Origin: Dendrobates tinctorius
Taxonomy: Eukaryota
Direction of reading: 5' to 3'
Assembly: GCF_039654945.1 (NCBI RefSeq)
Contig: NW_027361825.1
Location: 33,356,001-33,420,000 of the forward strand
DNA: 64,000 nt
In this document: positions 15,201 through 24,200 of the stretch, one piece after another
Numbering within the stretch: position 1 is the first letter of the stretch
How the letters are laid out: every line of letters starts with the position of its first letter
Program-made: the position numbers and the translations under genes
The notes under the pieces: model-generated
Told to the model about the DNA's origin: nothing
The model's database searches: none
Seen by the model: only the letters and a program-made list of their open reading frames with translations

Positions 15201-18200
15201 ACCCTCGATACTTTGGAACCTAAAGGACTCAATAGAGACTATGATATACAAGGATTTCTATGAGATAAACTATCCCCTATTTATTATGCACATATTCCAT
15301 AGGGCATGATATTATCATACTATTGTAGGATTAGCATACAAGCCTATTTTTTGTCTATTGTTTTTTTACTTATAATGCTCTTTTCTCTCTTTCTTTATAA
15401 TAGAATCGTTAGATCTTCTCTTCGTCATCCCACTGGGTACTTCTGTCTACTTGGTAATATAGTGAAAAATGAGGATGAATGAACTCATGGAGATCAACAT
15501 CCAACACTGCGCAGACACCATCACATGTTTCTCAGCGCAGTGATTTTAGAGCAATAGGAAATATGTAAAAACATGCAAAACACAAGCCACGGAGACACCA
15601 TCACATGTTTCTCAATGCAAGCAATGACTAGGCAGGTCTTTCCTCGGGAAGGAACAACCATGGGAAGGGCAGTCTCCAATGAAGGAAACCACCTATGCCA
15701 AAACATGGTATCCATCCACAGACAGCTGTTTCGGGGTATTGCCCCTCATCAGTGTGGAGTAGGAAACTGGCCAGTAGGAGCAATGCCTAGTAGAAGACTG
15801 TGAAAAATGAGGATGAATGAACTCATGGAGATCAACATCCAACACTGCGGAGACACCATCACATGTTTCTCAACACAGTGATTCCAGAGCAAAGCCCCCA
15901 TCCCTTATGGGAAATATGTAAAAATATGCAAAACACAAGCCGCGGAGACACCATCACATGCTTCTCAACGCAAGCAATGACTAGCCAGGTCTTTCCCCGG
16001 GAAGGAACAACCATGGGAAGGGCAGTCTCCAATGAAGGAAACCACCTATGCCAAAACATGGTATCCATCCACAGACAGCTGTTTCGGGGTATTGCCCCTC
16101 ATCAGTGTGGAGTAGGAAACTGGCCAGTAGGACCAACTCCTAGTAGAAGACTGTGAAAAATGAGGATGAATGAACTCATGGAGATCAACATCCAACACTG
16201 CGGAGACACCAAAACATGTTTCTCACCGCAGTGATTCTAGAGCAATGCCCCCATCCCTAATGGGAAAAATGTAAAAACATGCAAAACACAAGCCGCGGAG
16301 ACACCATCACAAGTTTCTCAATGCAAGCAATGACTAGCCAGGTCTTTCCCCGGGAAGGAACAACCACGGGAAGGGCAGTCTCCAATGTAGGAAACCACCT
16401 ATGCCAAAACATGGTATCCATCCACATGATATACAAGGTTTTCTATGAGATAAACTATCCCCTATTTATTATGCACATATTCCATAGGGCATGATATTAT
16501 CATACTATTGTAGGATTAGCATGTAAGCCTATTTTTTGTCTATTGTTTTTTTACTTATAATTCTCTTTTCTCTCTTTCTTTATAATAGAATCGTTAGATC
16601 TTCTCTTCATCATCCCACTGGGCACTTCTGTCTACTTGGTAATATATGCACCTCACAGTATATAGTTTAATGTACTGTACAGAGAGTGTGATCTCTCGGG
16701 TTTATAACATACCTTTTTCAGTTTACATAATCTTTAGGCCCACATAATATGCATATTTATAATGGTTTTCTATTTCAACAGCAGCCATATCTAAGTGATT
16801 ATCCCCATTTGTTTTAGGTAGACACTATTCAATTGTTCACACGATACAGGCGCAGCTACCCCGGTCACATGACCACTATGATGTGCACGGGCATCCACAA
16901 CCCTTAGTGACATGTGCAATATCTGGAACACTATCGCTCCCACAATACAAACGCAATCAGTGGCAACATGTGACCGTGGTGACGCGGCTCAATGGGCGGT
17001 CCCACCGGGTCTCACACCCGGAAGTGCATACTGGCACTGGGCGTCCTCTGCTTACAGCGAGACATATCGTACGCCGGACGAGGCCGCTCCACAGGTACGT
17101 CAGGGACATATATCCACTACTGCTGACATATAGCCATCCTGTTTTGTATCCTGGACATAATCAACATGGTGGTCCCCTTCTTTTTCCTTTCTTTAGCGCC
17201 ATTCAACAGCGATAAATCGCCATACTATAGCGCTACTTACTTGCAACATTCAGGTAATCAGTAATATCTCTTTTGATTCAAAAATAGGGAACCATATTGC
17301 TGCATATTTTTTCCTGATCCACAGGGATTTTCTTTGCTGCATATTATTGTGGACTATACATATACATATAATATAGCACTGTATAAGCGAGTTGGTCTAA
17401 CTTCACTTTTCCTTTTTTCCTCCAAGGAGGAACAGCCTATTTAGACCACGTATAGCACAAGCAGTATCGCTTCCGATATTGAAATGGGCACAAATTGCAC
17501 CGAGCACTGTAGAGCACTTATATCCTTTACTACCAGTGAGGAGTTTCACTTGTGATTTCACCCATGTCCTAACATGTACAATGAGTAGTATTCTTCTCCT
17601 TAACACCGAGTACTATATAAAATCACACTTATTGACTATAAGATGCGTATCTTTTTGGACCTGTGTCTGTTCTCCGAGATTGAAAGTATATACAGTTGAC
17701 ATGTGATGTTATAATTCAACGTCTTTCTTTCTTTATTAATATGCATCTTATTTAATTTTGTTTCTGTTTCTGTTATGAACTGCAGATCTCTATACAATCT
17801 CTGATGAAGGTCCTATGTTGCGACCGAAAACGTTTAGAGTAATGCTATCTGGATGCCAATAAAAATAGATCAACTTTTTTCACGATTTTGAGTGCCAAGT
17901 TGTTTATCATTTACCTGTGGTATTCTGGTCAGAGGTGACCAGCGCTGCGGTGTTGTTCCCCTGAGACTGCTGGTGTGTCGCAGCTGAGGTGAAAATAGTC
18001 TCCACAGGTAGAGCAATAGTCCCAGGGCAAAGATGTTAAATTAATAGTCAAAATGGCTGTAAACGTTGGGGTGCAGAGAAATGAGAGAAGGACACAGAGA
18101 GGTGCAGTTTCTTTACCTTTTACTGGCAATTGGTTGCAGTCCAGAGTACCACATACAGGTAATGGAATGAGTCCGGCTCGCCTGGAGGCATTCAGGGGAT

Positions 18201-21200: not shown

Positions 21201-24200
21201 CTATAGTGAGATTCAAATTCTCACCAATCCTATAGACACCCTCCACCTTGTCATACACCATCCAATTTCAGCCTGTTACATTGAGGTGTAATCTCTCCTG
21301 GGCCTGAGAAAATAGTTCTGCGTCATCAAATCTATAGTGAGATTCAAATTCTCACCAATAGTAGATACACGTTCTACCTTTTTTTACAGTACCATATAGC
21401 TGGTGGTATTTTGGGTACATTTTCACAAAAATGAGGAAGTATGTTGGAAGATGCCATGGAAGTGGGTGGGGGTTGCCAGCTGGTCCCGATGGTGGTGGTG
21501 GTGGTGTTGCATCTGTTGGTAGTGGCAAAAGCACAATAGCACCTAAGGCAGGAGGTGTTGAGCCTGCATCATCGTCTGGCTCCACAAGGCCTCGAAGGCT
21601 CTCTTTTCTGGGAGTAGGTAAACTTTTAAAGCCGGAGCTTCAGGAACAAGTTTTGGCTTACATTGCTGACACAGCCTCCAGCTTTCTCGCCTCCTCTTCT
21701 GAAGTTTTAAAAAATAGAAGCACTGAGTCGTCAGTGGAGGCTCCTGGTCAGGAACAACACCTTTCCTTGTGTCCTTCACCCCTACCAAAAGTGAAGGATG
21801 TGGCAGGCCACACTACCGATTACTCCATGGAGCTCTTTTCACATACCATGACTGGGTTAGCAAGTCAAATCGTGAATTCCTCAGTCCAAGATGAATCTGA
21901 CATGGAGTGCACTGATGCACAGCCACTGCTAGATTTTTCTGCTGGTACATTCACTCAGAGCACTACATTGTCCTTGCAGTGTACTGAGGCAGAATCAGAC
22001 TCTGATGAAACTCAGGTGCCCCTTCCCGCATACTATACCACCTTACACGGTGACACAGAGGAAGGTGCACATGAAATTGAAGAGGAGGTGATGGATGACC
22101 CAGTTGTTGATCCAGATTGGCATCCATTGGGGTAAGAGGGTGCTGCTGCCAATAGCTCAGAAGAGGAGGAGGAGGAGCCGCAGCAGGCAACGACATCGCA
22201 GCCGCTGTGATCTGGCATGACCGTAGCATTCCAAAAACCTGTTACAAAAACCAAAAGAGTTGCAGGACAGCTCGGCCAGACGGTCAAATTAGCACAGTGT
22301 GCAAGGTCTCAAAATGTATTCCATAGTAGGAAGAGTGCAGTTTGGCACTTTTTTGAACAAAATCCTAATGATCAGGCAAAAGTCATCTGTAAGAAGTGCG
22401 CAAAGACCTTTAGCCGAGTTAAAAATCTGAGAAATTTGAATACCAGTTGCATGCTTAGACATTTAACCACCATGCACTTGCAAGCGTGGACGGACTACCA
22501 AACCTCACGTACCACATGAGCACCTACTCCGAATGAAGGTAGTCAGCAACGCTACATCGCTTCCCCCACTGTAAGCCCACCGGTTAGCACACCACCAGCA
22601 GCAAATGTCGAGATGTCGTCGCAAGGGCAAAGCAGTCATGGAATCACAATGTTATTGCTACGAAAGACTGAATCTAGGCCATCAGCAACACCACCAACAC
22701 CATCACCATCACCAACCCTCTCTCAGTCCGCCATGTCCACCGCTAGTTCCACCATATGCAGCTCTCAAGTCCAGCTCACCATACCAGAGACTCTAAGTAG
22801 GACAAGAAAGTACTCATCCTCTCATCTGCGTACATTGGCTTTGAACGCCCACATTGCCAAACTAATGTCGTTAGAGATGATGCCCTACCGGTTGGTTGAA
22901 AGCAAAGCTTTCCGTGAGCTCATGGCCTACGCAGTACCACACTATGACCTACCCAGTCGGCACTTCTTTTCGTGAAAAGCTATCCCAGCCCTCCACGTGC
23001 ATGTGAAAGACCGCATTGTCCATGCACTCAAGCAATCAGTGAGTGTAAAGGTGCACCTCACAACAGATGCATGGTCCAGCAGGCATGGCCAGGGCCATTA
23101 CGTGTCCATCACTGCGCACTGGATTAATGTGGTGGATGCAGGGTCCACAGGGGACAGCGGCGGTGGGACAGTGCTGCCTAGCCCACGGTATAGGAAACAG
23201 TTGGCTGTAGGCGTTTGACCCTCCTCCTCCTCCAGAAGCGAAAGCTCGTCCACAGAGCGCAGTCGCACGAGCACTCCATCCGCAGCTGCCAGTGTTGCAC
23301 ACGAGTTGTCCCACTATCGAATAGCTAGTGGTAAGCGTCAGCAGGCTGTGTTGAAAATGATGTGTTTGGGCAACAACAGACACACCGTGAAGATACTGGC
23401 CGACTACTTGCAGCGACAAACTGAGTCATGGCTGGGCAGTCTACATCTTGCATATTTTTACATATTTCCCATAAGGGATGGGGGCTTTGCTCTAGAATCA
23501 CTGTGTTGAGAAACATGTCATGGTGTCTCCGCAGTGTTGGATGTTGATCTCCATGAGTTCATTCATCCTCATTTTTCACAGTCTTCTTCTAGGCATTGCT
23601 CCTACTGGCCAGTTTCCTACTCCACACTGATGAGGGGCAATACCCCGAAACAGCTGTCTGTGGATGGATACCATGTTTTGGCATAGGTGGTTTCCTTCAT
23701 TGGAGACTGCCCTTCCCGTGGTGGTTCCTTCCCGGGGAAAGACTTGGCTAGTCATTGCTTGCATTGAGAAACATGTGATGGTGTCTCCGTGGCTTGTGTT
23801 TTGCATATTTTTACATATTTCCCATAAGGGATGGGGGCTTTGCTCTAGAATCACTGTGTTGAGAAACATGTGATGGTGTCTCCGCAGTGTTGGATGTTGA
23901 TCTCCATGAGTTCATTCATCCTCATTTTTCACAGTCTTCTACTAGGCATTGCTCCTACTGGCCAGTTTCCTACTCCACACTGATGAGGGGCAATACCCCG
24001 AAACAGCTGTCTGTGGATGGATACCATGTTTTGGCATAGGTGGTTTCCTTCATTGGAGACTGCCTTTCCCGTGGTTGTTCCTTCCCGGGGAAAGACCTGG
24101 CTAGTCATTGCTTGCGTTGAGAAACATGTGATGGTGTCTCCGCGGCTTGTGTTTTGCATATTTTTACATCTTGAGGCTGTCAAGGTAGTTAGTGATTATG

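Follow-up and report, generated by a model that had tools for sequence, protein, structure and literature searches.

Two arrays of a 353-bp hammerhead retrozyme unit in a CYP2-like intron of Dendrobates tinctorius: probable separate insertions copied from RNA

Retrozymes that lack long terminal repeats (LTRs) and carry dimer-type type I hammerhead ribozymes have been described in salamanders, where both linear and circular RNAs were shown, and the ribozymes of amphibian retrozymes reportedly cleave poorly as monomers and well as dimers (PMC7229834). A catalogue covering seven amphibians, with 57 Xenopus families, gives a mean amphibian consensus of 316 bp, arrangement as dimers and short multimers, and an intronic location for 42-44%; it relates the frog retrozymes to the pseudo-LTRs of Penelope-like elements and proposes that Penelope-like elements mobilise them (Li, Clavereau and Pollet 2026, bioRxiv 10.64898/2026.07.22.740005). 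Here we analyse a 64-kb stretch of Dendrobates tinctorius DNA (contig NW_027361825.1, positions 33,356,001 to 33,420,000; hereafter the window), in which two arrays of one 353-bp hammerhead-bearing unit lie in a single intron of a CYP2-like gene. An earlier sequence-only reading of this DNA had placed the arrays in a class that was already known, as the salamander and Xenopus publications confirm. We consider it probable that each array arose independently, by reverse transcription and insertion of multimeric RNA from one very abundant amphibian non-LTR retrozyme family. Movement of animal retrozymes is still inferred rather than shown, and clean insertion scars are the cheapest evidence for it. 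The scars at this locus comprise an open reading frame (ORF) that is restored by the removal of array 2, a 221-bp duplication by the 3′ end of a Penelope-like element, and an array 5′ end at the predicted ribozyme cut.

Numbering throughout follows positions in the window, and unit position 1 is the first base after the predicted ribozyme cut. Tandem Repeats Finder, which was used to detect the arrays of period 353, called 15553-16426 (2.5 copies, 95% matches) and 23448-24169 (2.0 copies, 98% matches). The first array extends past its call to 15462 via a third unit, which carries a 15-nt deletion between 15554 and 15555, and base 16426 (T) can be assigned either to this array or to the 221-bp duplication. 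The arrays as delimited are as follows.

15462-16426, minus strand: array 1, 2.7 head-to-tail units (unit positions 1-353, 1-353 and 1-274)
23451-24164, plus strand: array 2, a permuted insert of 2.02 units (unit positions ~146-353, 1-353 and 1-153)

A GC content of 47%, the period of 353 and four hammerhead motifs fit a non-coding head-to-tail retrozyme, and the longest ORFs of the unit (111, 79 and 58 amino acids, aa) had no Pfam match, so that two arrays of one non-coding 353-bp unit stand as the sequence-only reading had them. Its count of four complete copies holds for the hammerhead motifs, all four of which are complete, while complete units from cut site to cut site number three (two in array 1 and one in array 2). 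Permissive BLAST found no further copy of the unit in the 64-kb window, and exact-pattern scans of metagenome and viral contigs, using a 26-mer outside the hammerhead and the 25-nt core, gave no match. Alignment of the unit as six pieces showed 27 variable columns out of 353, none of them within a 97-nt block centred on the hammerhead, in keeping with the substitutions that had been described as scattered outside the motif. The full 353-nt sense RNA was predicted to fold at -119.8 kcal/mol (z = -2.4), with z = -1.8 for the antisense.

Two further features of the unit body can be recorded. An exact internal direct repeat of 26 nt, TTGAGAAACATGTGATGGTGTCTCCG, recurs at 95-nt spacing (23764-23789 and 23859-23884, and likewise in every unit), and the retrozyme unit may have grown by internal duplication. 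Near unit positions 141-165 an A/T-rich stretch follows an octamer-like TTTTGCAT; a promoter of the small nuclear RNA type is said to serve newt satellite 2.

The 25-nt hammerhead core (CTGATGA, GGGG, CAATA, CCCC and GAAAC) occurs exactly four times, with none expected in shuffles, and a descriptor search found no other hammerhead-like motif in the 64-kb window. The occurrences and the complete motifs around them are given below.

15728-15752 and 16081-16105, minus strand: 25-nt core
23627-23651 and 23980-24004, plus strand: 25-nt core
16068-16111, minus strand: array 1 hammerhead copy 1, predicted cut between 16074 and 16073
15715-15758, minus strand: array 1 hammerhead copy 2, predicted cut between 15721 and 15720
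23621-23664, plus strand: array 2 hammerhead copy 1, predicted cut between 23658 and 23659
23974-24017, plus strand: array 2 hammerhead copy 2, predicted cut between 24011 and 24012

All four copies have one and the same full motif, running from TCCACA through the cut after GTC to TGTGGA, and in each the order is CUGAUGA, helix II, GAAA, C-AGCU-G, U-C and then the predicted cut, which follows a GUC triplet. Helix I would consist of UCCACA/UGUGGA (6 bp), then a UAC/U internal loop, then UCC/GGA (3 bp); helix II of GGGG/CCCC with a 5-nt CAAUA loop 2; and helix III of an A-U and a C-G pair only, capped by palindromic AGCU. The residues of the hammerhead core, namely CUGANGA (C3-A9), GAA (G12-A14), the A15.1-U16.1 pair and a non-G at position 17, are found in four of four copies. 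With helix I open, helices II and III closed and all core bases in place, the motif is, by its predicted pairing, a type I hammerhead, the same in all copies, as had been proposed. Since helix III is too short (A-U and C-G under an AGCU loop), cutting would be expected only via a double hammerhead paired through ACAGCUGU. The minimum-energy fold of a single 61-nt domain differs from the active hammerhead, and the predicted cofold of two such domains is a double hammerhead with an 8-bp ACAGCUGU helix III, at -45.7 versus 2 x -20.1 kcal/mol, the ACAGCUGU self-duplex being worth -11.1 kcal/mol. The modelled structures are those of a dimer-dependent (double) hammerhead; the suggestion that the palindromic stem III is of the dimer type agrees with this two-motif cofold and with the like layout of the axolotl ribozyme.

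For abundance, Logan contigs of four sequencing runs were mapped onto 15000-16900; the ends, strand and circularity of RNA are not visible in such contigs. The runs were DNA carrying the same species label (X1), a run with a second species label (X11), a true RNA library with a third (X17) and a run only guessed to be RNA (X15). Summed X1 depth on array 1 was 1.7-7.6 x 10^5, as compared with ~6-18 in the duplicated flanks, which is single-copy depth, and the family stood at comparable depth in X11. The family thus reaches roughly 10^4-10^5 times single-copy depth in two species labels, a contig depth that is not a copy number and can be read only very roughly, as tens of thousands of unit equivalents. 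X17 contigs were found only over ~77 nt on each side of the cut site, and the changes inside the motif, among the best-supported differences listed, were one-base insertions in loop 2 only. This suggests that the ribozyme block is the part common between species, DNA carry-over being possible in X17. X15 contigs span most of the unit. The family may produce the 353-nt monomers and circles that had been proposed for it.

At 15707 and 16060, several DNA contigs and one X15 contig leave the unit ~14 nt past the cut and continue into unrelated sequence, which points to a related subfamily with a common ribozyme block and a different body.

Array 2 is an insertion into a BED-finger transposase gene.

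22211-24796, plus strand: host transposon of array 2, with a BED-zinc-finger ORF and an interrupted transposase-like ORF
23442-23450: left copy of the target duplication, TACATCTTG, 9 bp, whose last 3 nt match the unit too
24165-24173: right copy of the target duplication, TACATCTTG, 9 bp, whose first 5 nt match the unit too

The zf-BED match (46.5 bits) lies upstream of the array in the ORF at 22211-22516, and the transposase-like ORF is split by the array into 23219-23450 and 24174-24796; excising 723 nt joins the two pieces in an open frame with no stop. The core of this transposase had no Pfam match, and the host element may be hAT-like, by motif resemblance only. The ends of array 2 are permuted and do not coincide with the predicted cut site. 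Its microhomologies, 5 nt on the right and 3 nt on the left, are such that the insertion fits target-primed copying.

Array 1 lies between two copies of a 221-bp segment that belongs to a decayed element.

14244-15461, plus strand: decayed, 5′-truncated Penelope-like element, with C-terminal fragments of a reverse transcriptase (RT) followed by a GIY-YIG ORF
15241-15461: copy A of the 221-bp duplication, comprising the last 20 nt of the Penelope-like ORF and 3′ untranslated region
16426-16646: copy A′ of the 221-bp duplication, directly adjoining array 1 on its 5′ side, where the array starts at the predicted ribozyme cut

The RT-like pieces stand in shifted frames at 14244-14742, where they were recognised by eye and Pfam gave no match. 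The GIY-YIG domain (PF01541, 28.7 bits against a cut-off of 22.6) is in a 193-aa ORF at 14682-15260, the nearest Atlas clusters of which are eukaryotic GIY-YIG fragments. With an RT followed by a C-terminal GIY-YIG endonuclease, this neighbour is Penelope-like, judging by its predicted domains. The depth of its family in X11 stops at ~16656, which is ~10 nt beyond the duplication and marks the 3′ end of the element. Copies A and A′ differ at 6 of 221 positions (2.7%). No similarity was seen between the 353-bp unit and the Penelope-like element of the window.

Two observations concern the Penelope-like element itself. A minus-strand ORF fragment at 14148-14243 contains a PADKGG motif and is head-to-head with the plus-strand part that encodes the RT C-terminus and GIY-YIG (14244-15260). 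This motif is typical of the N-terminal part of Penelope-like RTs, and the fragment could be either an internal inversion or an inverted partial copy of the Penelope type. In the 3′ untranslated region, an A/T-rich segment of ~113-151 nt at 15264-15398 (and 16449-16583) is missing from other family copies in both DNA runs, as seen from the joints 15263>15376, 15247>16584 and 15265>16566; because it is present in both 221-bp copies, this lineage-specific indel predates the retrozyme insertion.

On the ribozyme strand, the first base of array 1 is a U or a G directly after the GUC cut, one base being common with the duplication. Under a uniform null the chance of a 5′ end at the cut is 2/353 (~0.006), or ~0.011 when both array 5′ ends are allowed for and ~0.023 when all four ends are. 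Such an end agrees with complementary DNA (cDNA) synthesis up to the 5′ terminus of a template that the ribozyme had cut beforehand, and it is the one observation here, an indirect one, from which we infer cutting by the ribozyme in the animal. Array 1 would accordingly have had a linear RNA and not a circle as its template, and rolling-circle copying of a single circle is weakly disfavoured by the 5′ end at the cut. Units 1 and 2 of array 1 differ at 17 of 353 positions, as compared with 6 of 221 in the flanking duplication (Fisher p = 0.28, not significant); the units of array 1 differ mutually by 4.6-5.0%, and unit 2 differs from the units of array 2 by only 1.4-2.0%. The sequences give hints of a heterogeneous multimeric template for array 1. 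Were array 5′ ends found in excess at the cut across the genome, cleavage and the form of the template would both be attested in vivo without a wet experiment.

Two dispersed arrays with a 9-bp and a 221-bp duplication are the insertion scars expected of a retrozyme, and a life cycle can be proposed for them. Hammerheads in the RNA would pair through ACAGCUGU into a double hammerhead and then cut. For array 2, RNA would have been copied into the BED-finger (possibly hAT-like) transposase gene with a 9-bp target duplication. For array 1, the target would have been the 3′ untranslated region of a Penelope-like element that was older and decayed, at a point 10 nt from the element end, where nicks 221 bp apart would have given rise to the 221-bp target duplication, and the cDNA would have halted at the 5′ end of an RNA pre-cut by the ribozyme. 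The copying might have been done by Penelope-like machinery.

Several points weigh against this account of two insertions. At more than ten times the 9 bp of array 2, the 221-bp duplication is a length outlier, and it ends ~10 nt from the Penelope-like end, a coincidence that a simple nested model leaves unexplained. The array-free contig discussed below is known from its joint table, the contig sequence not having been read. The coincidence with the cut site is a single case. Rfam hammerhead models gave no match at gathering thresholds, nor on 9 kb with E up to 10; on 111 nt, the scan that had been suggested as a check yielded at best a wrongly permuted alignment to Hammerhead_3 (16 bits, cut-off 48.5), and the RAGATH-1 hammerhead at a sub-threshold 13 bits, a failure that may be due to a helix III of only 2 bp. 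Rfam matches to mir-981, sucC and others were dismissed as chance. Only one of nine intact-looking Xenopus dimer constructs cleaved in vitro (bioRxiv 10.64898/2026.07.22.740005), and therefore the activity of the present motif cannot be assumed. Finally, a 47-nt stretch chosen in advance would be spared all 27 changes with a probability of ~0.02, which is modest, and a second block, columns 224-281 (58 nt), is equally invariant, so that excess conservation of the hammerhead core is only weakly shown inside the window.

The strongest alternative makes array 1 and its duplication the product of one event, in which a Penelope-like RT began on the 3′ end of its own RNA (~231 nt), switched to retrozyme RNA and switched back; instead of a target duplication, the 221-bp repeat would then represent a partial tandem (pseudo-LTR) of the Penelope type. 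Such partial tandems are characteristic of Penelope-like insertions, the repeated 221 bp are the 3′-terminal part of the element, ending ~10 nt short of its end, and both the outlying length as a target duplication and the array-free contig being seen as a joint table alone leave room for such an event. Nevertheless, the ribozyme and the sense sequence of the Penelope-like element are on opposite strands, so that the event would need an antisense retrozyme RNA with a 3′ end exactly opposite the sense-strand cut site. Furthermore, one X1 contig at single-copy depth (5.7) connects the end of the Penelope-like ORF with the right flank, lacks the array and has the 221-bp region once (joints 15265>16566, 16656>16722 and 16787>16833), and other X1 contigs of single-copy depth over the array 1 flanks (records 3, 5 and 8) are 8-12% diverged from the window, against 2.7% between the two copies, unless gene conversion kept the copies alike. 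The array-free joint and this difference in divergence favour a Penelope-like element and flank that are older than array 1, and we regard the single event as unlikely.

A still less likely explanation, to which we give little credence, is that satellite DNA was mobilised in pieces as DNA, for instance as extrachromosomal tandem-repeat circles captured at staggered breaks, and that the hammerhead is an inert relic of recent inheritance. Tandem units and very high depth are satellite-like, four young copies with an unchanged hammerhead say little about constraint, most frog dimer constructs in the literature did not cleave, and the permuted ends of array 2 miss the cut site. However, capture of DNA leaves the 5′ end of array 1 exactly at the cut (p ~0.006) unexplained, both insertions have target duplications, the terminal microhomologies of array 2 are consistent with target-primed copying of an RNA, and the hammerhead block alone is common to the X17 RNA contigs. 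A single insertion followed by inverted local duplication, which the opposite orientation of the arrays and their 96% complementarity over 725 nt at a distance of 7.2 kb might suggest, is ruled out for practical purposes by unit phase (starts at unit positions 1 vs ~146, ends at 274 vs ~153) and by lengths, flanks, target duplications and host transposons that all differ, with no flank sequence in common.

Within the preferred account of two separate insertions, a more ambitious and distinctly tentative reading, which we hold to be possible rather than likely, takes array 1 as a genomic footprint of the retrozyme life cycle that includes cutting in the animal, a linear template and steering by Penelope-like elements. 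The cDNA would have extended to the cut 5′ end of its template, either a linear multimer or end-joined monomers, and the first nick, 10 nt from the old 3′ junction of the Penelope-like element, might reflect an endonuclease that re-cuts its own former target sites. If this were true, the Penelope endonuclease would steer retrozymes to places beside Penelope-like 3′ ends.

The gene that hosts both arrays is CYP2-like and on the minus strand. Seven exon pieces match PF00067 collinearly, from profile positions 30-84 through 407-462, and the closest solved relatives of the host p450 are CYP2A13, 2B4 and 2C8. The exons on either side of the arrays are as follows.

32128-32376, minus strand: CYP2-like exon upstream of the intron (p450 profile positions 135-189)
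11182-11451, minus strand: CYP2-like exon downstream of the intron (p450 profile positions 183-255)

The intron between them, of ~20.7 kb, holds both arrays and is what we take to be intron 4 in the usual CYP2 gene plan. Collinear p450 exons flanking both arrays, together with separate target duplications, bear out the proposal of two insertions in one CYP2 intron. The ribozyme strand of array 1 is the CYP2 sense strand and that of array 2 is antisense to CYP2, so that the ribozymes of array 1 could also cut the host pre-mRNA.

Other repeats of the window, which contains 503 N near 2.4-3.5 kb, are listed here.

20927-21359: tandem repeat of 131 bp between the two arrays, 3.3 copies, 94% matches
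49967-51222: second tandem family, its units ~416-427 bp long, with one terminal piece inverted
26708-29286: repeats of ~135 bp, among which the next feature sits
27667-28391, minus strand: decayed eukaryotic small-subunit rRNA fragment (RF01960, 232 bits) with large internal deletions
41437-42435 and 42692-43690: inverted repeat of 999 nt, 99% complementary, with a 256-nt spacer, a large young palindrome
52504-52803 with 56395-56694, and 52986-53203 with 56878-57095: direct repeats, 96-97% identical, at ~3.9-kb spacing, LTR-like

In the second tandem family (49967-51222), the descriptor search found no hammerhead motif and Rfam no match at gathering thresholds.

Among the described systems, plant LTR retrozymes (Cervera et al. 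2016, PMC4918200) resemble the frog element in being non-autonomous, protein-free and hammerhead-bearing, with a proposed spread via self-cleaved, circularised RNA. They differ in carrying type III hammerheads within LTRs, a primer-binding site, a polypurine tract and 4-bp target duplications, whereas the frog element has a type I hammerhead, no LTRs, and duplications of 9 bp and 221 bp. Minimal hammerheads known from Penelope-like pseudo-LTRs (Cervera and de la Pena 2014, PMC4209133) are likewise dimer-dependent with a short helix III, and those elements show head-to-tail partial tandems and 5′ truncation. In contrast to these, the frog motif would be a canonical type I hammerhead with an internal loop in helix I and a 5-nt loop 2, its element has no ORF, and the descriptor search found no hammerhead in the 3′ region of the Penelope-like copy beside array 1.

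The Xenopus retrozymes are also tandem hammerhead repeats of frogs, and the present arrays are likewise intronic short multimers. The Xenopus families are tied to Penelope pseudo-LTRs, while no similarity was found between the present unit and the Penelope-like element in its own window. Sequence comparison on the Xenopus side covered a few published primers, which showed no resemblance to the unit.

The closest likeness is to Ax330 and Ax353 of the axolotl and other salamanders (satellite 2; PMC7229834). RNA monomers and circles were shown for the axolotl, while the frog family is known here from DNA and contigs. Compared by eye, the ribozymes differ in the tetraloop (AGCU in the frog unit, ACGU in Ax353) and in the cut triplet (GUC in the frog unit, GUA in Ax353), and the rest of the frog unit shows no obvious likeness to Ax353. 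The layout of the Ax353 ribozyme (GAAA, C, ACGU, G, UA) is nonetheless the same as that of the frog motif. Both systems consist of non-coding tandem units of 330-353 nt at very high copy number, with a type I hammerhead that has a very short helix III and a palindromic tetraloop, for which efficient cleavage would be expected only as dimers, and the target duplications, when present in Ax330/Ax353, exceed 4 bp, as do those in the frog. The locus is an ordinary member of the described class, the metazoan non-LTR retrozyme.

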